Positions 15,817 to 51,946 of a DNA stretch of 64,000 nt are shown in pieces. The DNA lies in assembly GCF_036588685.1 (NCBI RefSeq), contig NC_086385.1:48941216-49005215 (forward strand), in the 5' to 3' direction. Within the stretch, counting starts at the first letter, position 1, and each line of letters starts with the position of its first letter. Origin of the DNA: Mytilus trossulus (taxonomy: Eukaryota). The notes under the pieces were generated by a model that worked only from the letters and a program-made list of their open reading frames with translations, was not told the DNA's origin and did no database searches. Position numbers and translations under genes: made by a program.

Positions 15817-16072
15817 CCGCCGATTTCATTGAGTGTAATATCTTTGGTAAGGTTACTTGTTACCTGAACCGGAAGTCATTGTTAGGTCAGGTAACCTACC
15901 CCTCTTTATTAGAGTAGGCTAGTCCAGGAGATAACCAATCTATTTGTCTGTTGGACTAAGCTACATCGAAAGGAGGTTACTATACCGGACCTTATAATGA
16001 AATCACGGTTCAGCTAACAAGCACGCTAACCAAAGATATTACCTTTGTCCACACACTCAATGAAATCGGCTG
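15817..16072. mobile_element. Degenerate foldback MITE
   Basis: GCCGATTTCATTGAGTGT-AATATCTTTGGT...TGAACCG is mirrored by CGGTTCA...ACCAAAGATATT...ACACTCAATGAAATCGGC; TA flanks. Confidence 0.7.
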
Positions 16073-27444: not shown

Positions 27445-27903
27445 ATGGATGACATTTTGAAAGATTTAAACCTTGGTACGTTAGTATCGCGTTTTAATGA
27501 TGAAAAGATTACACCAGATATAGTTGGAAAATTATCGAAATATGAGTTGCAAAATTTAGGTGTAACTGATGGATCTGCAATAATGAACCTTCGTTTGAAG
27601 TGTTTAAATCATGGTTCTTCGACTATGTACCGAGCTCCTGGAATTAGGCAATTTAATATACCAGAGGATATTCTTCAATTTTTTTTGGAATGCCAGTTTA
27701 CTGTTCGTGAAATAGCAAAGCTCCTATCAGCTTCCGAAAGTACAGTGTATAGAAGAATGAGACAGTGTAATTTAAAAAAAATAAACGTTTCAAACATTTC
27801 GGAGGAAGATTTGGACTTATTGATACAGGAGCTAGTGGTGGAATTTCCTCGCTGTGGCGAAAAGATGATTAAAGAACTTTTAGTCGAAAAGACAGCTATA
27901 CAG
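27445..27903 (+). CDS. Transposase exon 1: SAM-like domain plus helix-turn-helix (153 codons)
   Basis: ORF MDDILKDLNL...ELQNLGVTDGSAIMNLR (SAM-like) and FTVREIAKLLSASESTVYRRMR (HTH). Donor CAG|GTATAT at 27903/27904, phase 0. Confidence 0.85.
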
Positions 27904-29695
27904 GTATATTCATTCTCTCTTACTTTATTGCCACTTCATTTCATTTTGTTACCTATACTAATTAACTCCCAGCCATTTTAAAAAGTATTGCTTTTAAAAC
28001 AATAGATGTAACTTTCTACTTGTGCATACTAGTACCGGAATTAATGAAAGGAGATACAAAATTGACTTCGACTCGTGTCATACATTTGGTCGAATCTTTT
28101 AATATATACTAGGTAAATGTTCTTTTTGGGCGGGAGAGTAATTGTTTTGCCTCCTCTTTTTTCTAATATCTGTAACGTCTTTGCTTTCCCGTAATTTCAA
28201 TTATCTATCACGTTTTTCTATCATGTCTATAGGTGGCACACTTAGGTTAATGATTCTAAGCAGTGTGATTGGACAAAAAAAAACAGTATCAACTGAACAT
28301 ATTTTATCAAACTGAGGGATGAATCAGGCAAAACAAACAAACGGCTATGTTACATATTTTAATTCATTTCTGAAAAGTAAAATTACTCTTCAGTTAACTG
28401 TGAATGTAGAATTTTTTGCCGTGTTAAAAAGTGGTAAAAAATTCTAAAAAGGCCATCATTATCCCTTATGGGCCAGGAAATACTACCGTGCCACCTATAC
28501 GAGTATATCTATGAGCACAAATATACTAGAAATAACTGTACTATTTTCTATCAGTGCAAAGTTAACTATCCACAGCGTTCAGTAATGGTAAGAATGACTA
28601 AAATTTGTGTTCATAAAATACACAAAAGATTTGTCCTGTCCCGAAGTACAAATACTTTTTTCTATCATTCAACTTCAACCAGACAGTAACCCACCCCATA
28701 ACAGGATCATCACACAAAGATCAGAGTACTTTGGTATTCTTAATTTTATTACGGAAGTATTGAAGTGATCTCGTAAAAATCAAGAGTTCAAAATTGATAT
28801 AAAGATAAGAATTGATAAGATAAAAATTGATACTTTAAATCGGATGAGCTTTACTTAATTTAAGGAACAATACCAGTAATAGCTTTTCAAAAAAGGCTAG
28901 CCGTCCCTTAGCTGATGAACATGGAAAGTGTTCTCGCTTTGCAGATATATAATTCATTCGGAATAGCCTTACGTTATATCAATCAACAAATTTTACCACA
29001 CAAGTGAGGTCACACGTTATGAAGTATAATATCGTTTAACGTTGTTTGTGTTTACAAAACTACAGAAGATCCGGCTATTTATAGGTTTAAGTTACCTGTT
29101 TACCAATATCATATAGGTATACGCAAAAAATATTTTAATAGGTTATGGAGCTCCTTTCTGAGATATTTGAGGTTTTTATTTAAATGGCTGGAAAGGGCTA
29201 ATCTAAATTTTAACCTTAAATTTGCATTGGTAATTTTTTGGGGTCTCTTATGGAAAGCAAAGACATCTCGAATCTGCTTAAATCTTAGTAATTCACATAT
29301 AAAGCTATTGAAGTCTTGTACGAAAATAAAAAGAGTTGTTATGGGGCAAAATATTTTGTGAAACAACAAAACAACACAAGGAAAATATTTGGCTGAAAAA
29401 ACAAACTAACAAGAACAAAATCTTTTCACGGTCAAGACGTAACTCTTAATCACAGAAATGAGATATAATTACTTCTGCTAAAATCTCCTCTAAATACATT
29501 CAGTTAACACCGTTTTCGTGAAAACTCGTACTATTATCAAAACTGTTCGAATATTTAATAAAAATTGCACCCATTTGAAGATTGGATTTATCACGACAAA
29601 ACAAAATTTTAATGATGCAAGTTCTCTAACTTATTCTGTTGCAAAATTCCCATTTCAAACTTGTAGTTTTTGAAAAAATGATAGAAATCTTTTAA

Positions 29696-30094
29696 GGATG
29701 TACTTAGGTGAGGTAAGGGGAAAATTAATAAATTAAGAAGTTAAAATTGATACTATAAGCTGGTAGAGCATCAATTAAGGATAGAAATAAGCTAAAAATA
29801 TTGATAGGTCATGGACCTCCTTTTCGAGATATTTGAGATTTAAATTATGGCGGGAAAAGGCTAACTCTGACTTTTACCTTATATTTGCAGTGGTAAAATA
29901 AGGTCTCAAAACAAAAGAAAGAAAATTAAGAATCTTCTAAAATTTTGGTAAATGACCTTTCATGAGCTATTAAGTCTTGTATGAAAAAACAAATGGGTGT
30001 TTTGGAGCAAAGAATTTTACATTGTATTGTATGGGAAAACACCAAGGAGTCCGAACATTTGACACAAATTCCAAAACCTCACCTAAGTACATCC
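29696..30094. mobile_element. MITE with TTAA duplication (Kolobok-like), in the transposase intron
   Basis: TTAA-GGATGTACTTAGGTGAGG...CCTCACCTAAGTACATCC-TTAA. A diverged copy of its interior lies at ~29140-29360. Confidence 0.82.
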
Positions 30095-30888
30095 TTAATG
30101 ATGGCTCTCTATTTAAAAGTATTAATGGGGAATAGTTTTGACACACATCTCTCAAAGAAAGAAAAAAAAACGACCTAATAATATTTGTATTTGAACTTTC
30201 TGTGATTTTTTTCTGCGACTATATTTCCTGACGAGTCATAAAGGCAAGACTATGTTATGTATCAAGTTCAACACATGGTTTTATTTTAAATGTGTAGCTC
30301 ATTAATACTAACACGTTAGTTGTGACCACTGTACTAGCTTAGTGTTTGTCATTTACAGAATTTGATGAAGTATTGCATTTGACCCTAATAAAAGTACGAT
30401 TGATAACATAATTCATTAACATCATCAAATATGACTTTCTTCGTTAATAAACGGGGTGTACTCTGTATGTGCTTTTTAATTTGTCTCGTTTATGATTTTT
30501 GGCTGTTACAGCTAACCGACCTTCGCCATGTGATATAGGGAACACGTCAGATAGGCTCATCTCTTAATAAAAGTATGCACTAGATCGGCACGACAAAATA
30601 TTACTTTAGTTGCTACAATGCATGGTATCTCTTTGGAATCTGAATACTTTAACCATAAATGCTCATTATTGCAATACTTAGTTATTACATGTAGCATACA
30701 TAATTACATTGTAGTTTAACTACTGTCACATGCACATTGGACGTTGTGCATGTACTGGTAGTCTGTCTGTCTCTTCTTCTTTTCTAAATATGCAAAAGAC
30801 TGTCGGTCAAATTGATTATTTAATTTGAAATTAATAATTTCTTCTATTTAATTTTCTATGATCTATCTATATATTCAATTTTTAACAG

Positions 30889-31773
30889 GTGACAAGATCA
30901 CGTATAAGAGAGAGCTTACATCGAATTGATGAAATTGGCATAAAGGACAGAAAGAAGAGACGATTGCATAGACGAATATACAACGTGGATGGTGTTAATC
31001 ACATCTGGCATATTGACAGTAATCACAAGCTAATCCGATGGAATTTCATTGTGTTAGGGGGAATAGATGGTTTTAGCAGATTTTTGACTTTTCTTAATTG
31101 CCGTGACAATAATAAAGCAACAACAGTCCTCGATTCTTTCAAAACTGCTGTTGTAAATTACGGGTTACCTTTACGTGTGCGCTCAGATAAAGGACAGGAA
31201 AACTCATTAGTAGCTGATTTCATGATTAAAGAGCGCGGTCCAAACCGTGGAAGTATGATTACCGGGAAAAGCTGCCACAATCAGAGAATCGAAAGGTTGT
31301 GGAGAGACGTGTTCGAAGGGGTATTGTGCTACTATTATGATCTTTTTCATTTCATGGAAGAAGAGTGTTTTCTTGATATTTCAGATGACAACAAGATGTA
31401 TGCGCTGCATCACGTTTTTTTGCCAAAAATAAATGAGAAATTGAGCGTTTGGGCACAGGCATGGGGAAAACATCGCATAAGGACTGCAAAATCGTCGCCT
31501 CTCCGATTATTTACAGCAGGAATGATAAATAATCCAACAGATTTTGATATTTTGGACATTGGAAATTATGGAACTGAGGGCAATTATGAGGACAATTTTA
31601 ATGACTACGACGGTATACAAGATACAAGGCCAATTCTAGATTCCAGGGCTTTTTCAGTAAATGCAATTTGTCAAGAAGAACTTAACTTACATTGCCCCAG
31701 TAATTGGGCATCTTCATATTATGGAATCGATATTTATCACCAAGCAGTACAAATTATTGAGAGGAATTCTTAA
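30889..31773 (+). CDS. Transposase exon 2: RNase H-like DDE integrase core (IS3/IS481/IS3EU type); spliced product 447 aa
   Basis: Acceptor TTTTTAACAG|GTG at 30888/30889, phase 0, in frame with exon 1. Motifs WHIDSNHKL (D), GIDGFSR, VRSDKGQEN (D), NQRIERLWRD (E). No internal stops. Confidence 0.93.
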   Translation: MTRSRIRESLHRIDEIGIKDRKKRRLHRRIYNVDGVNHIWHIDSNHKLIRWNFIVLGGIDGFSRFLTFLNCRDNNKATTVLDSFKTAVVNYGLPLRVRSDKGQENSLVADFMIKERGPNRGSMITGKSCHNQRIERLWRDVFEGVLCYYYDLFHFMEEECFLDISDDNKMYALHHVFLPKINEKLSVWAQAWGKHRIRTAKSSPLRLFTAGMINNPTDFDILDIGNYGTEGNYEDNFNDYDGIQDTRPILDSRAFSVNAICQEELNLHCPSNWASSYYGIDIYHQAVQIIERNS

Positions 31774-34058
31774 TTGTAAAATCAATGCTTGCAACTTTTC
31801 TGTTTAAGAAACGTGTCGTGCTTCAAATTTGTTTTCAAGTCTTTTAACATTCAGATTGATTAAAAAAAGAAGCACTACTTGAGTTCGTAAAAACAAACTG
31901 AGTAAAACAGTTTACAATTTGTATTTGTATTCTATATTCCTTTTCTTTTACAATTCGGTTCAATATAGAATGTATTAAATAAGGAGATGTGGTTGATTGC
32001 ACATGAGACAAAAATTCAGCCACCGATATGAAAAATGGGAAACAATTCAAACCAGAAATTTACGGTCTACTAAAAAAAGAAAAGTTACGAAAAACAAATA
32101 TGACACACACCAACGACAACCACTGCACCACAGATTGCTGACTTGCGACATGCAAATTAGGTATATGGGTGATTTAAAACAAGTTTATGAGCGCTCTACC
32201 GTCCTCTGACCTGGGACAGTTATTTAACAGTACAATATAAAACAAACTAAAATTTAGTTGCCTTGATTAAACTCAAAACACGTACTCGCAGTTACTGAAA
32301 ACTATCTAAAAGCCAGTTACAAATGAAATAATAATCCATGCGTTTTCTGCAAGTCTTGAGTTTGAAAATAATTTTTTTTAATATTTAACACTTTACAACC
32401 CTAAATTACATACTGAAAATTCAAAATTACACACTTAGATTTTAAAAAGATACACGGAGATGAAATAAATAGAAAAAAGACACACGTAGAAGTATAAATA
32501 GATGTAAATATATTCTGAGGCGAATGCTTCTTGTATACGTTTCTTTTATAGATAGATTTCTCATAAAACCATGCAAGTACAAAGGTTACAGAGAAGTTAT
32601 ATAAGTATAGATAGAACAACCTACTCAAACACGCCTGGGCCTAAAAATGTGTACTCCACTTTCTTTTTTGATGAGATTATCAAGAGTCAGAGATGCAAAC
32701 TGATGTTTTAAGAATAAATCTGGTCTTTCTTTTAAGATTATCGGCGGTATTTATGCAAAAAAAAAATCCACGAGAATCGACTGTTTCTAGGTACCGTACT
32801 ATAGCTTAAAAGTTTACATACACACCAACGCTGAATTTGATAATATATGTAAAAATACATACAATAGATGCATTTACTCCGATATGAGGCACATTCATTA
32901 AACTTTTAAAGCCCACAGTATTAGGTGTAAACAATTCAAATTTACTTATCTCGCCTTTCTTACATTATTCTCTAACAAAGAACTTCTTTTTTTTGTGTTT
33001 TAATTTTAACTGTGTATCCGCCTACAGAAGAGTTTTGTAGCTCAATGACATTGGCCTATTCCTATTGTTACAGTAGTATATATAATAGGCATTAAATGTC
33101 ACTGCATTTTTCTCTTTGAACAGTTTGTTCAAGTGGTTTTTTTTTAAATTTTGATAAAAATGTTCACTATTTGGTTATATTTTGTGAAAGTAAAAGGGTA
33201 TTTTCTTGCTCTTTTAGTCAGGACAGTTTTTTTTCTATACGTTGAATCAATTATTTGTTTTTATTAAACATTTAACGCCATATTAAAAAATTCCGTGCGA
33301 ATTTTTCAGTTACTTCATCTCAGTTTGTAATTTTCAGTTATCAGTGTTTAATTTTTAATTTCATTGCGTAATTTTCAGTCTTTTTAATCGCAGTGTGTTT
33401 TTGTGAAATATTTCCGAGTTCAATGTCTAACTCTCAGCGTGTTTTTAAATCTCAAAATGTCGAAATTTTTCGATAGAATAGTGTTAACATAGTTTTGACG
33501 AGAGTGACTTGCGATAGAATAAGGTAGGAGAATACAAAGTACACCACTAATTCATGGTCCCATTGCTTTCTATGTTAAATTCCTCTGTTTCAAGCAGGCA
33601 CATCTCCTTTGTTTTAAGTTAAAATGAAGTGGCAATCATTGCATTTCAAAGCAATTGCATACTTTATGGTGTCTTGTACTGAAAAAAAATCAACATAATG
33701 GCATATAAGAAAGAACTGGTTCCCGGAACTTCGGATGTACCAAAACAGGTACTTTAGATCTGATAAACAGACAACATTTACCCTCTTTTTTAAATTTAGT
33801 GCAGTTTTTTTAATATTTAAAATTGAAAGTCCAAAAGTGTTCTACAATGATCACCAGTCCTCAAGCTGTCATGTGATAACAAAAATACCTAAATATTCTA
33901 CATATTTCAAAACTTACACTCATGCGTAGGAACTATCTTTGTGTTAAATATGTACTACTTTCTGATATGTGCTTTATGGCCGGGGCCGAATTAGTGGTGT
34001 AACACCTACAGATATAGTTTACAGCAGGGCTTCAAACTTTGTGATGGTTTTGAGCTTA

Positions 34059-34286
34059 CGGGGATTTCGCCTCCTACCCAGAGGTCCTCTGCCCTGGGGT
34101 GGCTGAGACTCGGTGGGGGCATTGGCTTCAAAACTCTCACCGAGTTTGAAGCCAATGACCCCCACCGAGTCTCAGCCACCCCAGGGCAGAGGACCTCTGG
34201 GTAGGACCGAGTTTTGAAGCCAATGCCCCCACCGAGTCTCAGCCACCCCAGGGCAGAGGACCTCTGGGTAGGAGGCGAAATCCCCG
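34059..34286. repeat. GC-rich foldback: one ~70-bp unit followed by two inverted copies
   Basis: TCCTACCCAGAGGTCCTCTGCCCTGGGGTGGCTGAGACTCGGTGGGGGCATTGGCTTCAAAACTC, then its reverse complement twice in tandem. Confidence 0.9.
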
Positions 34287-34364
34287 AAAGATCACGCGAT
34301 GATTGCAGCTTCCCAGTGGTGAATTTTTCATTGCTATGTAGCAAAATTCTAATAAAACCTTCAT

Positions 34365-34700
34365 ATGAGTATATCTCCCAGTTGATGTGATATAATCATT
34401 TTTTTCCATCATGATTTCCTTGAATGAAGTCGCTACTTACAAGGGACCAAGAGTTCAAAGCGGTGAAATTGAAATCATCCCTTTTCAAGCAAATTTCCTA
34501 TAGTCATCACGAGTTAGTTGGTTTCTTTCTACTCATACACGACGGATGTCACATGCGGAATGTTAAATGCTTACTATTCTGTAGACCAGGGTTCGCTTTT
34601 CGCCTTCGTTTTCAGATGGGGTTCAAATTGCCTTCTGTAGTTATCTATGAAGCCTTTCATGTACTGTTTTATAGTTTCGACCATTTTCTTCTTTTGAAAT
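34365..34700 (+). pseudogene. Degenerate fragment of a related Penelope-like RT 3' region
   Basis: TATATCTCCCAGTTGAT, ACCAAGAGTTCAAAGCGGTGAAATTGAAATCATCCCTT and CATCACGAGTTAGTTG resemble 52435-52600. Confidence 0.65.
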
Positions 34701-34708
34701 GGGTTGTC

Positions 34709-35153
34709 TTTTTATGCCCCACCTACGATAGTAGAGGGGCATTATGTTTTCTGGTCTGTGCCTCCGTTCGTTGGTCCGTCCGTCTGTGCGTCCGTCCCCA
34801 TTTAGGTTAAAGTTTTTGGTCAAGGTAGTTTTCGATGAAGTTGAAGTCCAATCAACTTGAAACTTAGTAAACATGTGCCCTATGATAATATGATCTTTTT
34901 AATTTAAATGCCAAATTAGAGTTTTGACCCAAATTTTACGGTTCACTGAACATAGAAAATGATAGTGCAAAGTTCAGGTTAAAGTTTTTGGTCAAGGTAT
35001 TTTTTGATAAAGTAGAAGTCCAATCAACTTGAAACTTAGTGTACATGTTCCCTTTGATAACATCATTCTAATTTTAATGCCAAATTAGAGAATTTATTCC
35101 AATTTGATAGTGCCAGTGGGGCATCCGTGTACTGTGGACACATTCTTGTTTTT
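34709..35153 (+). mobile_element. Non-autonomous Helentron-like (HINE-type) repeat
   Basis: TTTTATGCCCCACC...GGGGCAT sub-terminal IR, (TCCG)n microsatellite, duplicated core and 3' hairpin GTGTACTGTGGACAC, ending CTTGTTTT. Second copy at 53809-54062. Confidence 0.7.
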
Positions 35154-36530: not shown

Positions 36531-36787
36531 CTACTGCAATCCATAGTAAGCATTGCAGAAAGCGTAATCGAAAAAGTTAAACAAGACATCTTCTTCAGGA
36601 AGCTTCCCTCCATTCTCTGGAACTGTTAGCATTAGTCGGTTGATGCACGTATTGCCTGTGGGTAGATGTGATTTACGCTCTGAAAAATGTAGACTTGGGT
36701 GCAATGTAAACCCTAATATTGGTTCCTCTTCCACACTGGTTGCAAATTTCAGAACTTTGGCTAAGTTAACATCGCCCCTTCTTCCAC
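36531..36787 (-). CDS. SAM-HECT gene exon 6 (HECT C-lobe with catalytic Cys); spliced product 633 aa
   Basis: (S)GRRGDVNLAKVLKFATSVEEEPILGFTLHPSLHFSERKSHLPTGNTCINRLML...NAYYGLQ*. LPTxNTCxNxLxL is the HECT active-site motif. The six exons sum to 1902 nt (634 codons including the stop). Confidence 0.9.
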
Positions 36788-37531
36788 CTAAAACAAAATA
36801 AATTCATATTATGGGAGATGTGAATCGAAAATCTGAAATATAGTAAGGTTCATACAAGCCTATACTAGATGCACAGTACCTCCATAGGATTCATTTAAAA
36901 ATTGTTCTTCGATAGCAAAAGTGGTTGATACTCGGCAACAGATGAACTTAAACCGTGCTTTTTTGGGCCCTACATATTTTGATTCGTACATTGCTCAAAA
37001 TATATATGGGATGATTCGAAAATTGATGTTACAGACACTTTGAAAAGATTGAATTGATACGCCTTTGTGCATGTGTTACATAGCGGTCAAAGGGTTTTGA
37101 TGAAGTAGAATAACCACTGGATTATTCTTTTTGCATGGTATAAAAACTTCATTAGTATGTCTTATGGACTGGACAATCTATTTGTTAAGCTCCTCTCATT
37201 TTTTTATAATCTGATATTATTTTGTTTTTCACAGTAAATTTCGCGTTTTTCTGTGTCATATTAATGTAAATATACCAGATGTACATTGTAACATGTATTT
37301 TCTCTGTGCTATCAAATCCTATTTCACTATCAACAGCGGGTTCTGATAACTTTAAACAAGTATATTGGTTTAGTGATCGACGTGAATAGGTCCTGTACCT
37401 AAGTACCTATGTCAATTATAGGAGTTTAAAAACTACTGAAGCGACGAAAAGACTTGGACTCGTACCAAATGAGTATTCCATTACGTTTACTATAAGTCAT
37501 AAATTCGGATATTATTAAATCTAATACTTAC

Positions 37532-37709
37532 TAGCAGCTTCTCTTAAATATTTAAGAAATTTAGAATAGACTTTTTTTTCGGCTTTCATTCGATTTGACC
37601 CCTCTGCAGCAAACTCAGGCTTCAATAAAGTTGTTATTTTCTTGAAAGTGATCGGGGTTGGTTGAATTGGTGTGAACAAGTGGATTAATGAGGGTAAACT
37701 TCTGACCAA
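37532..37709 (-). CDS. SAM-HECT gene exon 5
   Basis: LVRSLPSLIHLFTP...LLKPEFAAEGSNRMKAEKKVYSKFLKYLREAA. Acceptor TTTTCAG, donor A|GTAAGT, phases 0 and 1. Confidence 0.88.
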
Positions 37710-38507
37710 CTGAAAAGAAAAAAAAAACAAGAGAGTAAATTGGTGCACGCACCACATTTTTGGGCCGGTAATATGGAGGTTTTTGGTATAAAAAAAAGTG
37801 CATAGTATAATCTGTATATTGAGATGACTCAAATCTTAAATTGCCAGAACTGGTTCATTCGAATAACTAGTAGTTATTTGATAATGCTATAAGATGTTAT
37901 TTTATATTGTGCAGTTGATGAAATCGAATATATTTTAATTGAAGCTAATGAAAAGGAATATCATCGAATTCATTTTCACGAGTTGATTTCGAAACTCAGC
38001 ACTATCAAAAATGCATATACTGACAAAATATTTGTATTCCTCATCTCAGATATGGATTTAAACGCAGCCTTTCATCTCATTTGTTCATCCATGAACATTA
38101 TGTGAAAGACAACATATTTTTAGGACCCTCGATTCTGACTATTAAAGACTCATCTCCTGATAAAATATCATTCTTTCTTTACGAGTTGTATCTCAGATAT
38201 GAACCCTATCATAAACCTTTAATCAGTCACTCATTTGTGAAATGTAGGTCAAGACTACCCTATTTTTATCAGTATCTCTTGTTTTTTAAGGCACATCTAT
38301 GAACAAAATATCAAGAACTTATTACTAAGTCTTATACTAGAATATATATTTGCTAAGAGGCCAGTTAAAGGACACCTCCGGGAGCGGGAATTTCTCGCTG
38401 TATTGAAGACCAGTTGGTGACCTTCTGCTCAGTGTTGTCTGCTCTATGGTCGGGTTGCTGTCTCTTTGACACATTCCCCATTTCAATTCTCAATTTTATA
38501 GCTGTAC

Positions 38508-38644
38508 CTGATAAAATCCCAAAGAATCAAGACCCCTGCGAAGGTCTTTTACAAATTGCCTTGGTTCCTCCGTATCAAAAAGTTCTTCTATCAGATCTGT
38601 TGTCATGATTCGTGGTAGAGCTCCATTCTGAAGGATGCTGAGAG
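38508..38644 (-). CDS. SAM-HECT gene exon 4
   Basis: Hand translation (A)LSILQNGALPRIMTTDLIEELFDTEEPRQFVKDLRRGLDSLGFYQ. Acceptor TTCTAG, donor CAG|GTACAG, phases 1 and 0. Confidence 0.85.
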
Positions 38645-39196
38645 CTAGAACAGAAGCATTGTATATTAAAATACAGAGTAGTTGAGACTGTTATTTAAAA
38701 ATAACATTTTTCAATTATTTCGTTATCTTGCTTTATGTTCCAAGCTTAAATATAATACATGATAAGTGTGTTTATACCCTTTAAAATAATACCCAAGAAT
38801 TAAGTAAGAGATATATTGGGTGTTACCATGAGATGTCATACAGGTGTAGTTGCCGCAGAGATTTCTGGACACGTACATTCTGCGTGTGACTGATATCCGA
38901 ACTTATTACGTATAGATACGCAAATATTATCGAGTGCAAAATAACATTACTTACTTATGAAAATATGTTTTAAAAAAACATTTATAAGTAGATCATATAA
39001 AAATGTTTTGTCGAGAAATATATAAATATCTATACGAATGAATGAGAAGACCGCTCTTCCTCCCACAATAAATTTCGACTTACAAAATTTAATCAGTCAG
39101 CAAAAAAAATTGATCCGAAACTAATTACGAGCTAAGTAATCTAGATAATAGATGTAGCGAGAAGAACATATGCATAATCTAGTGAGAAATAATTAC

Positions 39197-39323
39197 CAAA
39201 TATCTTCCCAATAACCTCATAATCTTTTGACCACTCCTTAACTGGATCAAAATACTTCTGTTTGATATCTCTCATTAGAATTGCAAAAAATTCCTTTCGT
39301 GGTCCACCCAAATCAACTGCACC
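39197..39323 (-). CDS. SAM-HECT gene exon 3 (HECT N-lobe)
   Basis: Hand translation GAVDLGGPRKEFFAILMRDIKQKYFDPVKEWSKDYEVIGKIF contains the HECT D-x-GGPxxEFF motif. AG/GT boundaries, phases 0 and 1. Absent from the ORF track. Confidence 0.9.
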
Positions 39324-39428
39324 CTAAAATAGAGATTTTTTTTTTGTAAATATTGCATTGGAAGAGCCCGACATTGAAAACATTAAATGTTACTATCTAA
39401 CCAAATGTTAAGATGTGGTCACATCTAT

Positions 39429-40377
39429 AGCGACGGTCACACCTTACCGGATAGCACGAACGGACGCCTAACGGATGAAAATAAAAGTTGTCCGTTGACA
39501 AAAAAGTTATCCGTAGAGAGTCCGTTAATGGACTGACCGAATAAAACGGACGTGTAACGGATCATGCATAACGGACACACACCGGATATGCAACGTACGA
39601 GAAACGGACACGTTCCGGACTGAACGGATGTCGAACATACATCCAACGGACGAGTAACGCATAAAACGGACACCTAACGGAAGCGTACCGGATAAAATGA
39701 ATGAACAAGATATCCGGAAAAACCAAAGGCGACAATGATAATAAATGTAAATCGCATAAATATTCAAATGTTTCTGGTTATGGTTTATTCTTTAAAATTC
39801 CGCCAAAATGCAGTGTCTGGCCTGAATAAGAACTGCTTGATTGTGAAGACGTGACTTTACTCTAAGATCGATTATGAATGATAAGAATTCATGAACCTTA
39901 AGAAATCTGACATACCAATAATTGGCATTTCAGACGCGAAATTTTTAATTTGCATTTATCCGTTTCATATCCGTTTTATCCGTTAAACGTCCGGTAGAAG
40001 TCCGTTTCTCATCCGTTCGACATCCGTTAAACGTCCGGTAGAAGTCCGTTGGTGAATTAATCTTCCAGACGTCCCACGGACACGTAACGGTTACAAAACG
40101 GAAACGAAACGGACGAGTATCGTATAAAACGAACGCATAACGGATGTTCAACGGACATTTTATCCGTTGGACGTCCGTTCAAAGTTTTGAACATGCTAAA
40201 AAAATTCCAACGGACAGAACGGACGTCGACGGATAAAACGTACGCTTAACGGACATGCAACGGATATGGTCGGACGTCTAACGGATAAAAACGGACGTCT
40301 AACGGACATGAACGGATTGAAAAAAAGTTATCCGTTAGGCGTTCGTTCGAGCTATCCGGTAAGGTGTGACCGAGGCT
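39429..40377. mobile_element. Non-autonomous TIR element rich in AACGGA motifs (Harbinger- or Kolobok-like), in SAM-HECT intron 2
   Basis: CGGTCACACCTTACCGGATAGC...GCTATCCGGTAAGGTGTGACCG with ~45-bp imperfect TIRs; the TSD is ambiguous. Confidence 0.78.
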
Positions 40378-41219
40378 TAACTGGTTTTGGTTTGTTTCTC
40401 AAAATGTCGCCAAAGGGTAAAGTGTCTGGCCTGAAAAAGAGCTACAGGTTAGTATTTGCTAATCATTTTCATAGAAGCAGATGCATATGTGTTTTCCTCG
40501 CATAGGATTTCCATGGATATCTGCCATCTTTACCACTTTATCGACATCATTTTTATAACGTTTCAAAACATTTAATGTGCACAAATCATTTTTAACTAAC
40601 TGTAAAAAAAATTATGTTGTATAGTTCTTAGAAAGAAAGTGAAAAACAGAAGAAGATGAATATAAAAGATTTAATAACGACGACAGATGTAATACATAGT
40701 AGGTTATATATATAAGTGAAAGTGAACAATTGAAAGCCCAGCTCCTGCTGGAGTAGGAAGGGAGTACATCGGTACATGACTAAGTAACATTAATGTTAAC
40801 CATTATTTATCCTGGTATATTGATGATTTGGACAAATTTGATCTGGCGGTCAATGCCACCGTCTTTAATGGTAAACGTTGTGACGTAAATGCCAAAAATA
40901 AGTTAAGAAGTTTAAACGACATATTTTGGTTAAAACATTGTACATGGAATATTCATATCAAGTAAATTTTGAATAATTTCACTGCTACAGAAGAGTGGGT
41001 TCATACTCCGTTCGGGGAAGAACCTAGGATGAACTTTATCAATAGCTGGGGATAAATCTCAGACTAAATACTTTTCTTTTGTGTTTCAAAATTAACAATG
41101 GTATAATTTATAGGCTTTGTTTAATATATTGCCTCATCTTGTCATAAACATTTTGCATGGGCTACATTGCATATGGTATACTAGTAATTGAAATTAATGA
41201 TACAAGTATAAAACTATAC

Positions 41220-42232
41220 CTCCTCATAAAACTGTACTTGCAAAGTCAATCTAAGATCTGTAAGGGCAGTTATCTCTTCAAAAGCCGATTGCAACAAAGT
41301 ATCCCTATCAACCAAAATAAAATTGGTTTCACCATCATTAGTTGTGGCATCATCTGAAAGATCCAGGTCTCGGCCACAAACAATTTTCTCTTGTATGTGC
41401 CGAAGAATGTCAACAGGATCTGTTACCTCATGTTCGGTACAGAAATCTATGCAAGAGTTTATTGTTCGCTTCAATAGATCTTCAGTCTGTCCCGTCATTT
41501 CAGTAGTGGTTTCATTATTATTTCTAGCTAAATGCAAAGGTGGAAGATCTTCATCTGAATTGTCAACCGAATCAAATTCTGTTGGAAGGTTAAAACTAGA
41601 TGTGCTTTGTATTTCTGCAAAAGGTTCTGTTGACTGTACATTTTGTACATTATCATCACAATCCTTCAAATGATCTCTAAGATCTGTTATCAGAATATCT
41701 TTTTCGCAAAATCTGCATTTTTCTTTTATTTCCGATGTATTTGCAATCTGGACAACGGGACTTGCACTCATTGATAAGTTTGCTTGAATTGGTCGAATGT
41801 AAATTTTAGATTGACCACCAATTATTGACCTCAAACTTTCTGGTGTATATTTACTAGATATGATTTCTAGTAATCTGCAATTGCTTTGGCATCGTAGAAG
41901 CTCAAACCCACCACAATCTCGCAACTTGTTGAATCCTTCCTCGCTAAATAGTTTTTTTGTGAAGAGCTCTTCACTATCATCTAAGCAAAATTGTATTTTC
42001 TTGTTTCCCAAGCCTGCTCTTTTCAGCACCACCTTTTCTTCTCCGGTAGGCGTTTTAATGGCGTCTCTGTTGGACAGACAGACGAACTCACAAGTCCATG
42101 TCCTGGGTTTTTTATTCTTCTGTCTGCTACTAGTGGTAGCAGTAAATCTGGACCTAGATGGTCTAAACAATGAAATTCTTTCTTCAAGATTCTGTGCAAT
42201 TCTATCTTCACCTCTCTGTGGGCGAGTATGTG
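41220..42232 (-). CDS. SAM-HECT gene exon 2: conserved globular domain, CxxC-HxxxC zinc finger, acidic linker, start of HECT
   Basis: Acceptor TTTTTTAG|CA. Open frame includes WTCEFVCL...AGLG...GGFELLR...KIYIRPIQ, CRFCEKDILITDLRDHLKDC and ILVDRDTLLQSAFEEI...LQVQFYEE. Donor GAG|GTATAG, phase 0. Confidence 0.88.
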
Positions 42233-42698
42233 CTAAAAAATAATTAAATATCTCACAGTGATACCTATGGCATTTTTTTCTTACCTACAGTATGAAATAA
42301 GTCACAATAAAATTAACAAACGATGAGGTCGATTTGGGGTTCCGTCTTTTTTTTTCTTTTTTTTCTGGAAAACAGCAAAACACAGTCGTTCGAGCTCTCT
42401 GAAGAAATGACGCAAATTTGGAGGCAATCTAGCAACACATTTCTTAAAATTAAAATTCAAATAAAGAATTGTTGATGTTAATATTTGGTTTGTTTGTTTT
42501 GTACAATACGGAATTATTTGCATTGCTATTCCGAAGCCATGACCAATTTCCCCTTGATTCTTTTCATTCGATTAGATAGGCTAATCATGTTTTAAAGAAC
42601 CCGGTAGATGCTCATTATAGTACATGAAATTACGTCACATTATCTATTTGTATACCTTGAACAGGTATTCCTTCAAAAAACAAGGCCAAGGCTATTGC

Positions 42699-43772
42699 TT
42701 TTTGTCGAGCCTGCAACTTTTGTTGCAGAAAGCTCGACATAGGGATAGTGATCCGGCGGCGGCGGCGGTGTTAGCTCACTTCTTAAAAGCTTAATATTTT
42801 AGAAGGTAGAAGACCTGGATGCTTCATACTTTGTATATTGATGCCTCATGTTACGAACTTTCCGTCAGTCAACTGTCCAATGTTCTTGACCTCATTTTCA
42901 TGGTTCAGTAACTACTTGAAAAAAAAGTTCAATTTTTTTGTAATGTTAAATTCTCTCTTATTATAAGTAACTGGATAACTATATTTGGTAAGTGCGTACT
43001 TTGCAAGGTCCTCATGACCGTCAGATAGTTTTCACTTGACCTCGACCTCATTTTATGGATCAGTGAACAAGGTTAAGTTTTCGTGGTCAAGTCCATATCT
43101 CAGATACTATAAGCAATGGGTCTTGTATATTCGGTGTATGGAAGGACCGTAAGGTGTACATGTCCAACTGGCAGGTGACATATGACCTTGACCTCATTTT
43201 CATGGTTCAGTGGTTATAGTTAAGTTTTTGTGTTTTGGTCTGTTTTTCTTAAACTATATGCAATAGGTCTACTATAATTGGTGTATGGAATGATTGTAAG
43301 GTGTACATGTCTAGCTGACAGGTGTCATTTGACTTTGACCTCATTTTCATGGTTCAGTGGTCAAAGTTAAATTTTTTAGTTTTGGTCTATTTTTCTAATA
43401 CTTTATGCATTAGGTCAACCATATTTGGTGTATGGAAATATTTTATGAACTATATGTCAGTTACGCAGGTTTTATTTGACCTTGACTTCATTTTCACGGT
43501 CCATTGCTAAGTTTTAAGTGTTTGTGTTTTGGTCTGTTTTTCTTTATTTATAAGCAATAGTTGTATTGAAAAATTGTTAGCTGTACATGTCTGCCTGGCA
43601 TGGTTCATCTGACCTTGACCTCATTTTCATGGTTCATTGATCAATGTTTCATTTTCTTGGTTAATGTTGAGTTTATGTGACAGTTGTAATAAAGCTTTAT
43701 ATTTAGGTCTATCAAGATAGTATCAAGGATTAGTAAAGAAGGCGAGACATTTCAGTGTGTGCACTCTTGTTT
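42699..43772 (+). mobile_element. Helentron-like repeat with internal ~140-150-bp tandem cores
   Basis: 5' TTTTGTCGAGC...GCTCGACA IR, (GGC)n tract, reiterated TGACCTTGACCTCATTTTCATGGTTCA, 3' ...GCACTCTTGTTTT. Confidence 0.65.
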
Positions 43773-43974
43773 TATATTGATTTTTTTTTAAATTGTCAAT
43801 AAGCCATATAGTATCGAACAAATTCAAATGGGATGCTGTTTTTCTTATTTTGAATATATGTATAAAATTGAGAATGGAAATGGGGAATGTGTCAAAGAGA
43901 CAACAACTCGACCAAATAAAAAACAACATAATTGTATAATTTAGTTACTTTAGAACAAAATCGAAAATTATGAA

Positions 43975-44358
43975 TAAAATTGAGAATGGGAATGGGGAAT
44001 GTATCAAAGAGACAACAACTCGACCATAGAAAAAACAACAGCGGTAGGTCACCAACGGGTCTTCAATCTAACGATAAATTCCCGCACCCGGAGGTGTCCT
44101 TCAGCTGGTACCTAAACAAATATATACTAGTTCAGTGGTAATGAACGCCATACTAATTTCCAAATTGTACACAAGAAACTTAAATTCAAATAATACAAGA
44201 CTGACAAAGGCCAGAGGCTCCTGACTTGGGACAGGCGCAAAAATGCGGCGGGGTTAAACATGTTTGTGAGATCTCAACCCTCCCCTATACCTCTAACCAA
44301 TGTAGAAAAGTAAACGCATAACAATACGCACATTAAAATTCAGTTCAAGAGAAGTCCA
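43975..44358 (+). repeat. Dispersed high-copy SINE-like repeat
   Basis: Begins AAAATTGAGAATGG.AATGGGGAATGT. Other copies at 43863-43928 (+), 38340-38498 (-), 55305-55568 (-) and ~23695 (decayed). Confidence 0.8.
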
Positions 44359-46253
44359 GGGTGTTGTTCAGCTTAGATTTTTTTTAAATCTTGTCCAAAG
44401 TTGGGGTCGGGCACCCTACCCCATCCTTACGGAATAAAAAATGTTCTACAGCAATAATTTTTTCGCCACTAGGTGCAATGTGAAGCTGAATAGCTAAGGT
44501 CTACTTGAGAAAAATCAAGGGTGTAGTTCGGCTTTGATTTTTTTTTAAATTTGGTCCAAAGTTGGGGTCGGGCACCCTACCCCACCCTTACGGAAATATA
44601 AATAAAAAATGTTCTACGGCAATACTTTTTTTGCCACTAGGTGCAATGTGAAGCTGAATAGCTAAGGTCTACTTGAGAAAAATCAAGGGTGTAGTTCGGC
44701 TTTGATTTTTTTAAAATCTGGTCCAAAGTTGGGGTCGGCACCCTACCCCTCCCTTACGGAAATATAAATAAAGAATGTTCTACGGTAATACTTTTTTTGC
44801 CACTAGGTGCGATTTGAAGCTGAATAGCTAAGGTCTACTTGAGAAAAAATCAAGGGTGTGGTTCGGCTTAGATTTTTTTTTTAATTTGGTCCAAAGTTGG
44901 GGTCGGGCACCCTATCCCACCCTTACGGAAATATAAATAAAACATGTTCTACGGCAATACTTTTTTCGCCACTAGGTGAGATGTGAAGCTGAATAGCTAA
45001 GGTCTACTTGAGAAAAAATCAAGGGTGTGGTTCGGCTTAGATTTTTTTTTATTTTGGTTCAAAGTTGGGGTCGGGCACCCTAACCCACCCTAACGGAAAT
45101 GTAAATAAAAATGATCTACGGCAATACTTTTTTCGCCACTAGGTGCGATGTGAAGCTGAATAGCTAAGGTCTACTTGAGAAAAATCCAGGGTGTTGTTCA
45201 GCTTAGTTTTTTTTTTAATCTGGTCCAAAGTTGGGGTCGGGCACCCTACCCAACCCTTACGGAAATGTGAATAAAAAATGTTTTACGGCAATACTTTTTT
45301 CGCCACTAGATGCAATGTGAAGCTGAATAGCTAAGGTCTACTTGAGAAAAAATCAAGGGTGTGGTTCGGCTTAGATTTTTTTTTTAATTTGGTCCAAAGT
45401 TTGGGTCGGGCACCCTATCCCACCCTTACGGAAATGTAAATAAAAAATGTTCTACGGCAATACTTTTTTCGCCACTAGGTGCAATGTGAAGATGAATAGT
45501 TAAGGTCTACTTGAGAAAATTTCAATGGTGTAGTTCGGCTTAGATTTTTTTTTAATTTGGTTCAAAGTTGGGGTCGGGCACCCTACCCCATCCTTACGGA
45601 AATATAAATAAAAAATGTTTTACGGTAATACTTTTTCACAACTAGGTGCAATGTGAAGCTGAATAGCTAAGGTCTACTTGAGAAAAAATCAAGGGTGTGG
45701 TTCGGCTTAGATTTTTTTTAATTTGGTCCAAAGTTGGGGTCGGGCACCATACCCCACCCTTACGGAAATGTAAATAAAAAATGTTCTACGGCAATACTTT
45801 TTTCGCCACTAGGTGCGATGTGAAGCTGAATAGCTAAGTTCTACTTGAGAAAAATCCAGGGTGTTGTTCTGCTTAGATTTTTTTTTAAATCTGGTCCAAA
45901 GTTGGGGTCGGGCACCCTACCCAACCCTAACGGAAATGTAAATAAAAAATGTTCTACGGCAATAATTTTTTCGCCACTAGGTGCGATGTGATGCTGAATA
46001 GCTAAGGTCTACTTGAGAAAAAATCAAGGGTGTAGTTCGGCTTAGATTTTTTTTTAAATTTGGTCCAAAGTTGGGGTCGGGCACCCTACCCCACCCTTAC
46101 GGAAATATAAATAAAAAATGTTCTACGGCAATACTTTTTTTGCCACTAGGTGCAATGTGAAGCTGAATAGCTAAGGTCTACTTGGGAAAAAATCAAGGGT
46201 GTGGTTCGGCTTAATTTTTTTTTAATTTGGTCCAAAGTTGGGGTCGGGCACCC
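44355..46253. repeat. Tandem satellite, ~168-bp unit, ~11 copies, in intron 1 of the SAM-HECT gene
   Basis: GTTGGGGTCGGGCACC-like anchor recurs at 44400, 44561, 44728, 44896, 45064, 45230, 45399, 45567, 45733, 45901, 46070 and 46237. Confidence 0.97.
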
Positions 46254-49200
46254 ATAGAAGATATGGTTTGGTGCCAATGAGACAACTATCTGCAAGAAAC
46301 CAAAAAAACACAGATTTACAAACTATGGGTCGCCGTACGGCCTTCAACAACAGGCAAAGCCTATTTCGCATAGTCGGCTATAAAAGGACCCGAAATGATA
46401 ATGTAAAACAAATAGTCAAAACAGAAAATTAACAAAGTCCGTATCATCGTATGCGTAACTTAGTTGCTCACCAGAGGAACACTACGCAAGCGTTTAAACG
46501 CGCGTTGCATAAGTTTGAAGTACCCCGAAATGCAAAGGTATACGCTTGGTGAACGCTTTTACCTCAGGAAATTTTAATTAAGAATTGAATGCTTTTTTTT
46601 GTAAATTTATTGGGGTGTAAAAGCGTTGACCAAGTACATTTAATATGAAGCGCGGAAGCGCTTCATACTAAAAATGTGCGCACGGTCAACGCTTTTACAA
46701 CCCTATAAAGGTACAAAAAAAAAAACATTCAATACTTATAATTACATTTTTACCTATAGGATCATGAAAACACGCCTTTTATCAAGTTTTTATTTCATTT
46801 TTCTGTGCACTTTATTGTGGGACCTCGTGTCATCATAAATGAAAAGTTGCATTGTGTAATGCAATTGATTAAGGAATATCACGAGGTTGCTAGTTAGCCA
46901 ATCAGAATAACGTACATGTATTATAATGAAACATACATCAAATGCAATTATTGGAACATAAAAAAAAAAATCATTCAGCTGAAGCATTTGTCAAGCGTAT
47001 ACCTGTAAACTGCACGCACATAATATACACGCTACACGAGCGTTGAAAACGCTACAGATAAGTTTGAGACACGTTAAGGGCACATTGCATACAAAAATAC
47101 TCGTCTCCTTAAAGCCTTCATTCAGGAGAAGTCCGATACGGGTGAAACTTCATCAAACCTACAGAAGATATTACACCCTCTCCAACCATGCAGCATGGGA
47201 CAAGACATAGAAGCACTGGAATGCTCCCATTATTTTGAGCTGTACAAGATCTACTAAAATATCCCACCTGCCTCAAAGGTGCATAGGATCGACCATGGTC
47301 CAGCACTAATGATACAAGTATCAATCAGAGTTACAATGACGTGGGAGTAAGTATTCAAAGGCCACCGAGCGGCCTCCAACAATAAAAAAAAAACTATTTA
47401 TAATTAGTCGGCTATTAAATGCCCCGACCATTAAGATTTAAAAACAAAAATCAAACAAAACTAAACAGCCTTATTGATAACGAAATAATTAACGAAATAA
47501 AACTTGACCGACATGAACTATGAACAACAACCACTGTACTCATGTTCCTAGCTTAAGAATGGGCATTGGCACATAAACAATGTGGTGGCCATAAACTCAA
47601 CCCTCCCATATGAACCAAACCTAGGACAGCACATCGCAAGAAAAAACTGTAAAATATCAGTTGCAATTCGCGTCCCTAAAGATATGGGTACGGTGCACAA
47701 TAATCACTTACATAAAACAATAGAAACAAATCACTGGAATAAAAGTACTTGCACTTACCGAAAGCTATTCCAAAGCTAGTGAAAAAGTAGACGAACCAGT
47801 GGACATAGACGGACTGGTAAACATGTAAACAGACGGATGAATGTGACAGACTTATTGACATACATTCACATATAGACAGACCTGCAGTTGGGAATGTAGA
47901 AAGACTAGGGGAAACGCATAGGTACGCTTCACGCACACCCAATACACGCTTTAAGCTCGTTGTGCACACGATACAGATATGATTGACAGGCTGAATGCAT
48001 CAACATTACTAACGTATTGGTAGCGTGCATGATTTTTTTTACCATGGCCGACGTACGTCGGAGCTATATGTTGATGTGTGAAGCCGGTATTACATTAAGT
48101 AAGCAGGCAATGTCAGTTTCTAATTCTTATGCACAACAAAAGTAATATAAAACAATACATCTTTATTAAACAACTATCTAATATATAATGTCAAACAAGC
48201 ATTTGGGTTTACGATTGCATTTCTTTTTAAAAAAAAAGCAACTTGTTTATATATTAAACATTGGTTATATATAGATAAAAGAATTTTGAGTACGTTTGAA
48301 TCTTATTCAATTTTTGGGTTCATAGACACACCCGAAAAGTGGCTGCTAGCGTAGTGACTGCTAGCGAGTGGCTGCTAGCTTGAGCCTGGTAATGATTTAT
48401 ACTCTGTATCATATATTTCAACAGGAGAGTATATATGTGAACTGCTTTCTGATCCCTAGCACCTGGGTTACCTTCATTTCTTCTTTTGTCTTACAGCAGC
48501 CGAGCAGGCTATTTATCAAACTACTGTATTTAATACTACTAAATATATGATTAGTATGGTTATAACCGTATGATAATAGACTGAAATTATCGTAAATTCC
48601 ATAAATTTCGAATTGGTGCTTAGTGGGCTTATATGAAATATTTATCATATGCTTCAAATATTAGCACGTGCCTTTCCGTAGTAACGTTATCGTAGGACAT
48701 TCGGGTGATACACATCACATCAATGATACTTTTCAGTGAAAAAACATTAAAAAGTAGGGTACAAAAGAATTTTTTGGATACAGGAAAGTATATTGTGTAA
48801 AATTCAATAAAAAGAATATCAAGCAATCAATTAGATAAACGAACTAACAAATGATAAAAAAACGCATTCTAAAAAGAATGCAACATATCTCAGAAAATTA
48901 CTTGGATGATTTTTTTTTTGTTGAATGTTTTTTTTTAATCGTTCTCATAAGAATAAGTCATACTGTTGTTTTATTTCTCTGTTGAGGCATTTGATAGACA
49001 TCTCTCATTTTGAATGTATTTCCTTTTGGGTCAGACGTCTGTGAACTTTTCACTCTTTGAACTTCTATTTTTCCATTAATCTGGGTTTTTTTCGCCATTG
49101 TTGGAGCATATATAATAAATCATTTTTCATATCGCATGATTTATCAGCCCTCGGTCAATATCAGCCTTTGAGTCATGCGACCCTTGAGCTGATATTGTAC

Positions 49201-49924
49201 CTAGGACTGATAATTTATACGATATGAAAAATGCCATGCAATAAGCTGATAATTGCAGTTTTTCAGTAAAACGTTGAATAACTGATATACTTTTAATGAA
49301 ATCCGTTTGATTTATGTTCATGGCTCCTATTTTCCACTTACAAATTCAATATTAAAGAAAACTGTGGAAAAATTTGTTCCATTAGCGCAAGCAAACATGT
49401 GCTTTATTTTATTTCATTTTTAAATTACAAATTAAAAATTTAATATGTACTACTTTTACCGGATTCCAGACAAAATAAAGAATTTTTTACAGTGAGTTGC
49501 TCCCCCTCCCCCTTTTATGAATACTTCTAGATCGTCCACTTCTCTTTATTCATTTATTTTTTTCTCTATATAGTAACTATATTGACACTCATCACCTATA
49601 TTTTTTCTTTGACGTTGATTTTTTTATAGTTTATTACGTGAGAGCACCCAACTTGCACATATTTTTACTGCTTTTTTACCTACGTTTTTTTATGATCCAG
49701 ATTGGATAAAAACAAAGCCCTTGTTAGAGAAGGAGTCAGGGAGGGGCAGGGAGGGGCAGGGAGGGGCGGGTCCCTAACGGACCTATGCTAAAACAGTTAC
49801 TTTAACGGTTAATGCAGGCTTTGACTTTTTCAAACTTGTGGCAAAGGAAAACTTCACTTTTATACATATACTCTAGTCGAAATAAAATAGCCTTTCAAGA
49901 CGACAGAAATATTTGGACTAACAT

Positions 49925-50039
49925 CACAGGAGTTTGAAATCCTATCAATAAGGGGGCTATCACAGTAGAGCTTCTCTCGTTTGATAGTCGACTTTGGTAT
50001 ATGTTTACCCCCTTATTTTTAGGATTTCAAACTCCTGTG
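49925..50039. mobile_element. 115-bp MITE with 7-bp TSD (CA..TG ends, P-element-like)
   Basis: CTAACAT-CACAGGAGTTTGAAATCCTA...TAGGATTTCAAACTCCTGTG-CTAACAT. Confidence 0.75.
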
Positions 50040-50075
50040 CTAACATATAGCCCAAGAACGGATTTAGGGGGAGCC

Positions 50076-50281
50076 TAGTCCAAATAATAATGACGTCTTG
50101 AAAGGCTATTATATTATTTTTTTTTGACGCCTTACATATTATATTTTTTTCTTTGACGCCTTAACCAAAGACGTCAAAAGGCGTCAAAGAAAAAAAATAT
50201 AATAGCCTTTCAAGACGTCGATGTAGGGCGTCAAAGAAAAAAAAAGAAAAACCTTTCAAGACGTCATAATTATTTGGACTA
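50076..50281. mobile_element. 206-bp foldback MITE with 9-bp TSD (TAG..CTA ends; Academ- or MULE-like)
   Basis: GGGGGAGCC-TAGTCCAAATAATAATGACGTCTTGAAAGG...CCTTTCAAGACGTCATAATTATTTGGACTA-GGGGGAGCC. Confidence 0.8.
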
Positions 50282-50590
50282 GGGGGAGCCTAGAGGTCCC
50301 GGAACCTTTAAGTTGAAAAAAATTGGTTGGTTATATAGGGAATCACTTTCGCATGACTGGACAGAGGCGGATTTAGGGGTGTGCCCCCCCCCCCCCCCCC
50401 CACTTTTGGGAAAAAAAATTGGTTACTGAAGCGTGACTGGAGCGGGCCCCCTCTTAGGTCAGTAAGTGGGGCCCCACTTATGAAAATTTCTAGATCCGCC
50501 ACTGCTGGAGCCCATTCTCTCCCCTAACAAAAAGTTCTGTATCCGCAAATGTTTATGAATAAATATATATAATTATATGTTGGCTCTTAC

Positions 50591-50780
50591 CTTTATTTAC
50601 CTCTGACCTGAACCGTGTTCGGTCTCCAATTGTCGTAATTCCCAGTCGCGACAAGTCTGCATCTGTTAAGGCACGACACGTTTCTAAATTGTCAACTTTA
50701 CTTTCAATGAAATTGTTTAACAAGTCATTTAAATTAATTTTTGTCAGCACTGCTTCCACGTTTGTTAGCGTCGACGCCAT
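50591..50780 (-). CDS. SAM-HECT gene exon 1: SAM domain
   Basis: MASTLTNVEAVLTKINLNDLLNNFIESKVDNLETCRALTDADLSRLGITTIGDRTRFRSEVNK has a SAM signature (LTDADLxxLGIxxxGDR). Donor AAG|GTAAGA, phase 1, matches the acceptor phase at 42232. Confidence 0.8.
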
Positions 50781-51894: not shown

Positions 51895-51946
51895 CTTGTC
51901 GTTTGTATATCTAATTTGTACGTGTTTCTCGTTTCTCGTCTTATAT

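Follow-up and report, generated by a model that had tools for sequence, protein, structure and literature searches.

A Mytilus DNA transposon with a DDE transposase and a predicted HECT ubiquitin ligase, both headed by a SAM domain and tentatively read as a docking pair

Little is understood about the accessory proteins that eukaryotic DNA transposons encode. In PIF/Harbinger (a transposase with a Myb-like protein) and in ProtoRAG (RAG1-like with RAG2-like proteins), a DDE transposase and a second protein are co-inherited between terminal inverted repeats (TIRs), and in Harbinger the two element proteins bind each other. Among cellular proteins, ANKS6 binds one end of ANKS3 polymers. The heterotypic pairs ANKS3/ANKS6 and EphA5/SAMD5 are precedents for a SAM domain whose end-helix (EH) surface meets the mid-loop (ML) surface of a SAM on another protein (PDB entry titles). 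Here we describe a DNA transposon with long TIRs, 25,184 bp in length (26711-51894), from a 64-kb window of Mytilus trossulus contig NC_086385.1 (48,941,216 to 49,005,215, forward strand; 0 N, G+C about 31%); positions are those of the window, the whole stretch of DNA that was analysed. Inside its TIRs lie two genes, one for a DDE transposase and one for a companion that is, on the prediction from its sequence, a divergent HECT E3 ubiquitin ligase, and both proteins start with a genuine SAM domain. Near-identical database proteins (P0151, P0152 and P0187; 97-99%) are annotated as Mytilus galloprovincialis.

The start codons of the two genes face inward, each just inside one TIR (ATG 27445 on the plus strand for the transposase, ATG 50780 on the minus strand for the ligase), and the interval under study, 27445-50780, runs from one to the other. 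The two N-terminal peptides that an earlier, sequence-only reading of this DNA had placed at these ends were found exactly, at 27454-27564 (+) for the transposase and 50637-50750 (-) for the ligase, in frames open from the two ATGs. The ligase N-terminus scores 30.6 bits with Pfam SAM_1 (E = 4.4e-7; cutoff 23), and its AlphaFold2 (AF2) model consists of five helices with a mean predicted local distance difference test (pLDDT) of 83, for which the best Foldseek matches are the SAM domains of SAMD5, EphA4, ANKS6, BICC1 and tankyrase (TM 0.65-0.75, probability 1.00). As a single sequence, the transposase N-terminus of the window stays under the cutoff of 23 for SAM_1 (16.3-16.8 bits). An exhaustive search with transposase exon 1 returned 699 relatives, mostly exon-sized fragments, and a profile built from 57 relatives spanning the N-terminus has as its best match in the PDB the SAM of tankyrase-1 (5kni, E = 2.9e-6), with further matches to TNKS2, CNK2, ANKS6, BICC1, SHANK3 and SARM1. 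Taken individually at E <= 0.05, 24 of the 57 relatives match SAM_1 (best 7e-6) and 16 match SAM_2. The AF2 model of the transposase N-terminus likewise has five helices (pLDDT 94-98, residues 1-55), and all of its best Foldseek matches in the PDB are SAM domains (tankyrase-1, Shank2/3, BICC1, ANKS3/6; TM 0.6-0.74, root-mean-square deviation 2.0-2.5 Å). A missing SAM fold at one N-terminus, which the sequence-only reading had named among the outcomes that would refute it, was thus looked for, and both termini proved to be SAM, covering residues 1-55 of the transposase (27445-27609, +) and residues ~3-62 of the ligase (50595-50774, -).

The likeness between the two N-termini themselves is weak but real. 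BLASTP finds no match between them; their Smith-Waterman score of 45 is attained by 4 of 2000 shuffles, and alignment of the two SAM families by HHalign gives 96% probability (E = 3e-9, 51 columns). The common residue pattern described in the earlier reading is therefore beyond chance.

The pairing of the two genes is conserved. Of 3491 candidates, 3218 are related to the transposase core at E <= 0.001; they come from bivalves, one gastropod and one octocoral. The best 120 matches include 68 full-length relatives, of which 65 have the SAM (median 87 bits) in the same order of SAM, helix-turn-helix (HTH) and core, the other three being N-terminally truncated; this SAM-HTH-integrase architecture extends the known domain repertoire of transposases. 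A scan of metagenome contigs, with a tighter core alignment (A3) as query, gave 80 loci, many of them on contigs of only a few kb, and at 16 of the 80 the transposase is followed by a ligase gene on the other strand, the two arranged tail to tail just as they are in the window. Compact elements of 5.3-7.3 kb are present in full at three loci (L059, L060 and L075), each with tandem arrays inverted at its two ends and, between them, a transposase and a ligase that converge, a common design which indicates that the two-gene element is a family and no accident of one locus. The window shares no DNA of at least 150 nt with the WLWD01 loci, and its own element is the only one with both SAM ends in view.

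In a quick tree of the transposase core, the SAM-bearing transposases, window included, form one clade (SH-aLRT 100), and all eight of the SAM-bearing ligases found belong to the main clade of bivalve ligases. Those of L059, L060, L020, L034 and L057, which have no SAM, form a clade of their own (SH-aLRT 97), and these loci also cluster in the transposase tree; as the two trees group the same loci, the two genes have largely diverged together. At L059, L060 and L075, which lie outside the SAM clade, neither protein has a SAM (negative profile scores, no Pfam match), and no concealed SAM exon was detected between the ligase open reading frame (ORF) and the right TIR of L059 and L060 (profile scores at most ~1 bit). 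Nor do the two proteins of these SAM-less (group B) elements have some other N-terminal module in common: similarity is none to marginal and without a Pfam match, the score of the pair being reached by 490/1000 shuffles for L075, 19/1000 for L059 and 37/1000 for L060. The L040 type has a SAM spread over two exons (17469-17591 and 18915-19028, minus strand), which belong to the repeated unit and lie 5' of a divergent ligase encoded on the same strand; the second half of this SAM alone matches Pfam SAM_1 at 21.8 bits, and the N-terminus of the transposase is not a SAM. It may be read as an independent gain of a SAM by the ligase or as another gene within the repeated unit. Where the ligase tree joins L040 to L075, the grouping was flagged as a possible long-branch artefact, and direct comparisons were used instead. 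As a separate observation, the HTH of the SAM-less transposases is preceded by some 100 helical residues at the N-terminus (L059, 742-1050; L060, 605-900; L075, 270-600; L040, 9671-10000), a region that has no Pfam match and may be an alternative oligomerisation module.

Tankyrase provides the reference for the surfaces through which the two domains could meet. Its ML contacts are E897, Q898, I899, D902, V903, E906, M907, E911 and I915, its EH contacts A919, Y920, G921, H922, H924, K928 and R932, and either mutation, Y920A or V903W, leaves the domain monomeric (Mariotti et al. 2016, PMC4980433). HMMER sets the transposase stretch E-K-I-T-P-D-I-V opposite tankyrase E-Q-I-T-L-D-V-L, with its Asp aligned to tankyrase D1055, which was mutated to break the polymer. 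Tankyrase E897, I899, D902, V903, M907 and E911 correspond to transposase E20, I22, D25, I26, L30 and E34, all very well kept among transposase relatives (E20 in 46/55, I22 in 50/57, D25 in 50/56, I26 in 43/54, L30 in 52/57, and Glu or Asp at 34 in 54/57). On the other face, a hydrophobic residue equivalent to Y920 (position 43) is absent from the transposase family (Arg in 29, Ser in 8, Lys in 5 and Gly in 2, the window having Gly), as is a G-x-R motif. The ligase family, for its part, has a nearly invariant T-I/L-G-D-R-x-R at the start of helix 5 (I/L51, G52, R/K54 and R/K56 each in 8/8), together with a partly kept ML surface (E/Q27, I/V29, D/E33 in 6/8, L38, D/E/Q42), in which the V903 equivalent is variable. 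The positions equivalent to Y920 lie at the N-terminus of helix 5 in both AF2 models and are the first residue of that helix in the transposase model. The conserved surfaces of the two families are thus complementary by alignment, which suggests that the EH of the ligase docks on the ML of the transposase. A tankyrase-like filament of the transposase is unlikely on the same comparison, because the transposase family is without the hydrophobic EH residue that tankyrase polymerisation needs (PMC4980433), and the earlier proposal that the ligase caps such a filament is accordingly disfavoured.

Together, the conserved tail-to-tail gene pair, the distribution of the SAM over both proteins or neither, and the complementary ML and EH surfaces support a functional link between the two SAM domains indirectly and in part, and it is from these that we infer the contact between them, its polarity and any target of ubiquitination. 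The element would be a cut-and-paste transposon whose rva_4 DDE transposase and convergent HECT ligase, each with an N-terminal SAM, would be expressed from equivalent inward-facing 5' regions at the inner edges of the TIRs. The two SAMs, most likely acquired separately from cellular SAM genes, would serve as a docking pair in which the EH of the ligase (T-I/L-G-D-R-x-R, helix 5 start) binds the ML of the transposase (E20, I22, D25, I26, L30, E34). With the transposase sitting through its HTH on arrays of 21-nt units in the TIRs, the SAM contact would tether the E3 there, and the tethered ligase could ubiquitinate the transposase or nearby host proteins. That the two SAMs act as a docking pair of transposase and ligase is a tentative proposal, to which we give somewhat less than an even chance.

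Several points weigh against it. The two SAMs are no more alike than each is to unrelated cellular SAMs. Their both-or-neither distribution has one probable exception and covers few independent lineages: the L040 lineage probably has a SAM on the ligase side and none on the transposase, in which case the coupling is not strict. The SAM-less elements, moreover, mean that the partnership of transposase and ligase needs no SAM. Finally, the surfaces are assigned by alignment to tankyrase and not from coordinates, and the splice joining ligase exon 1 to exon 2, ~8.4 kb apart, is predicted from homologues and phase-compatible sites.

The best-surviving alternative is that each SAM associates with itself, the transposase SAM multimerising or synapsing the transposase on the 21-nt arrays and the ligase SAM oligomerising the HECT enzyme, with no SAM contact between the two proteins. 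The combination of SAM and DNA-binding domain has a precedent in TEL/Yan, the closest SAMs on either side self-associate (tankyrase, Shank and BICC1 for the transposase; BICC1 and ANKS for the ligase), and in both element SAMs the ML half has stayed acidic and the helix-5 half basic. The ~25 in-phase 21-nt units of each TIR would suit cooperative binding, and the probable presence in the L040 type of a ligase SAM without a transposase SAM also fits self-association. However, it leaves unexplained why a SAM heads both proteins in one clade and neither in three complete relatives; group-B elements have similar arrays in their TIRs and no SAM, and the transposase family lacks the Y920 equivalent, whose replacement by Ala makes the tankyrase SAM monomeric (PMC4980433). 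We consider independent self-association somewhat unlikely.

A second alternative looks to the host: one or both SAMs would bind host SAM proteins, such as chromatin or signalling scaffolds, and so guide the ligase towards substrates of the host, or the transposase towards particular chromatin. The ligase SAM of the window does score higher against cellular SAMs (24-26 bits; ARAP2 25.1, BICC1 24.9, ANKS6 24.1) than against transposase SAMs, none of which exceeds 20.0 bits, its structural matches include partners of heterotypic complexes (SAMD5 with EphA5, ANKS6 with ANKS3), and the SAM on the ligase side of the L040 type has no transposase SAM to bind. Nevertheless, the co-occurrence of SAMs on both element proteins goes unexplained unless both aim at one host polymer, and we consider host targeting decidedly unlikely.

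The remaining alternative, an ancient inverted duplication that had also been put forward from the sequence alone, holds that the two SAM exons are inverted copies of one TIR-plus-SAM module, alike for historical and not functional reasons, and is very improbable: the regions upstream of both ATGs are indeed near-identical inverted copies and the profile-profile similarity is significant, yet the inverted repeat halts 53 and 24 nt before the ATGs with dissimilar coding DNA behind it, the pairwise score of 8.2 bits falls below those of the ligase SAM against cellular SAMs, the transposase SAM profile rates ligase SAMs (at most 30.3 bits) no higher than human tankyrase-1 (30.1 bits), and in intronless relatives the SAM is no separate exon. 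In numbers, the 5' regions adjoining the two SAM exons are near-identical, unlike the SAM-coding DNA, which shows no similarity between the exons (score 11 against a shuffle mean of 9.9, reached by 266/1000 shuffles), and the five ligase SAMs scored with the transposase SAM profile gave 30.3, 29.7, 20.3, 16.3 and 9.7 bits. Separate capture of the two SAMs from cellular genes is the simpler and most likely reading. Of the interpretation from which this work set out, then, the SAM on both proteins stands, the filament cap is disfavoured and the inverted duplication finds no support.

The symmetry of the two ends is real. The left TIR (26711-27391, +) begins with the outer end TATGGAACGCC, followed by 21-nt tandem units and by a unique segment common to the right end; the right TIR (50805-51894, -), defined by inverted-repeat detection and Tandem Repeats Finder (TRF), has the terminus ...GGCGTTCCATA. 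The two are 88% identical across 449 nt, and their outermost ends align over 190 nt. Each contains ~25 tandem 21-nt units, at 26750-27265 on the left (period 21, 24.6 copies by TRF) and at 50948-51147 and 51229-51771 on the right. Since 21 nt make two helical turns of DNA, such units would present their sites on one face, and the arrays are candidate binding-site arrays for the HTH of the transposase. The inverted repeat reaches inward to 27391 on the left and 50805 on the right, so that a TIR and then a SAM exon follow each other at both ends, as the sequence-only reading had it. The unique, near-identical inverted segment upstream of the ATGs (27300-27391 and 50805-50912, the right copy with a 16-nt insertion) is probably a promoter or 5' untranslated region shared by the TIRs and driving the genes inward. 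Immediately outside the TIRs, GTTGTC (26705-26710) and CTTGTC (51895-51900) form a candidate 6-bp target-site duplication, identical at 5 of 6 positions in this single copy of the element. A reverse-transcriptase fragment lies directly outside the right TIR (51875-52652; weak RVT_1 match, E = 5e-4), and the element has apparently landed in or beside a retroelement. Further away, at 12001-16000, a 4-kb stretch distant from the element has strongly negative AT skew (-0.29, -0.22).

The transposase gene consists of two exons. Exon 1 (27445-27903, +; 153 codons) encodes the SAM, a linker, the HTH (residues 74-107; Pfam HTH_23 and related matches) and a helical region, and ends at a GT donor at 27904 in phase 0. 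Exon 2 (30889-31773, +) encodes the DDE core, of the rva_4 integrase type, and the C-terminal region down to and including the stop, and matches Pfam rva_4 at 254 bits (1e-75) and rve at 24 bits. Both are colinear with an uninterrupted relative of 451 aa (P0017, residues 1-152 and 159-442). The D, D and E motifs are intact (WHIDSNHKL, RSDKGQEN and HNQRIERLW) and fall on the invariant columns D204, D261 and E296 of core alignment A3; the core has distant similarity to that of HTLV-2 integrase. Near-identical database proteins (P0151, P0152 and P0187; 97-99%) are annotated as Mytilus galloprovincialis.

The ligase gene was reconstructed from Pfam and homology searches run exon by exon. Exon 1 (50591-50780, -) is the SAM exon, colinear with the N-termini of P0159 and P0180; its donor AAAG|GTAAGA and the acceptor of exon 2, TTTTTTAG|CA at 42232, are both in phase 1, so the reading frame is kept. 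Exon 2 (41217-42232, -; 338 codons) encodes a family-specific middle region and ends at the start of the HECT domain, LQVQFYEE. Four HECT exons follow on the minus strand: the first exon of the N-lobe (GAVDLGGPRKEFF..., 39186-39323) and two exons with approximate limits (38505-38657; 37530-37763, matching P0156 residues 415-509 and P0180 residues 430-490), all three located by tblastn, and the last exon (36534-36794), which runs from the HECT C-lobe to the stop, matches Pfam HECT at 28.9 bits against a cutoff of 23.9 and contains the catalytic-Cys motif LPTGNTCINRLML. The protein is very divergent, most exons having no Pfam match; all of them, the four HECT exons included, are colinear with the SAM-HECT protein P0180 of Solemya velum and with P0156 of Mytilus edulis, and the N-lobe of P0180 resembles the HECT N-lobes of AREL1, E6AP, Rsp5 and NEDD4L. 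The SAM exon is assigned to this gene because relatives have the parts fused, SAM and middle region within one uninterrupted ORF in P0159, P0170 and P0171, and SAM, middle region and HECT within one protein in P0180. Residues 168-191 of exon 2 give a weak hint of a C2HC or TRAFD1-XAF1-type zinc finger (E 0.005-0.02), whose C-x2-C ... H-x3-C pattern is retained in relatives. The first intron (~8.4 kb) holds a 169-nt satellite (44358-46253, 11.4 copies, 91% matches) and a 147-nt repeat (43032-43560, 3.6 copies), and it is chiefly intronic insertions such as satellites that make the window element ~4 times the size of its compact relatives. In a HECT intron, 11-, 21- and 22-nt repeats (TCCGTTAAACG-like) occur in both orientations at 39955-40317 and produce spurious open frames on both strands.

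The wider picture, of an animal transposon family with its own HECT ligase in one clade of which SAM(EH)-SAM(ML) docking tethers the ligase to the transposase and delivers the E3 to the transpososome, is possible and on balance doubtful. If true, it would be a transposon-encoded ubiquitination module with built-in docking, whose E3 at the transpososome controls the turnover of the transposase or, where the element inserts, modifies chromatin or repair factors of the host, and an element-encoded E3 physically coupled in this way would be a new route to self-regulation or host manipulation. The docking idea is testable, as it concerns two domains of ~60 residues with a predicted interface between transposase E20, D25 and I26 and ligase I51, R54 and R56, and nature supplies controls in relatives in which neither protein has a SAM and, probably, in others in which the ligase alone has one. 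Our literature search found neither an element combining a transposase with a HECT protein nor a SAM-bearing transposase, Repbase lying outside the search and an earlier description elsewhere being possible.

Among described elements, IS3EU/GingerRoot and Ginger are likened to the window element by description, having an rve-like DDE core and TIRs in common with it, and the papers on them mention neither SAM nor HECT. A 6-bp target-site duplication is reported for GingerRoot (PMC6839031), and the candidate in the window is also of 6 bp; the termini of Ginger are TG...CA (PMC6839031), those of the window element TATGG...CCATA. Compared with PIF/Harbinger and ProtoRAG, the co-inherited partner is here a HECT E3 ligase and the contact proposed is one of SAM with SAM. 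With cellular HECT E3s (AREL1, E6AP/UBE3A, Rsp5/NEDD4) the predicted ligase shares the Pfam HECT match of its last exon and the catalytic-Cys motif, and it differs from them in its strong divergence, family-specific middle region, N-terminal SAM and location in a transposon. The SAM of tankyrase (TNKS/TNKS2), which forms a head-to-tail ML-EH polymer, is the best match of the transposase SAM in both sequence and structure, and its ML contacts E897, I899, D902, V903, M907 and E911 correspond to conserved residues of the transposase family; the family nevertheless replaces the buried Y920 of the EH surface by Arg, Ser, Lys or Gly and has no G-H-R motif, so that a homopolymer of the tankyrase kind is doubtful, and the context is a transposase and not a PARP. 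The ANKS3/ANKS6 and EphA5/SAMD5 pairs, which are among the best structural and sequence matches of the ligase SAM, join cellular scaffolds and receptors, whereas the putative partners here are two proteins of one mobile element.

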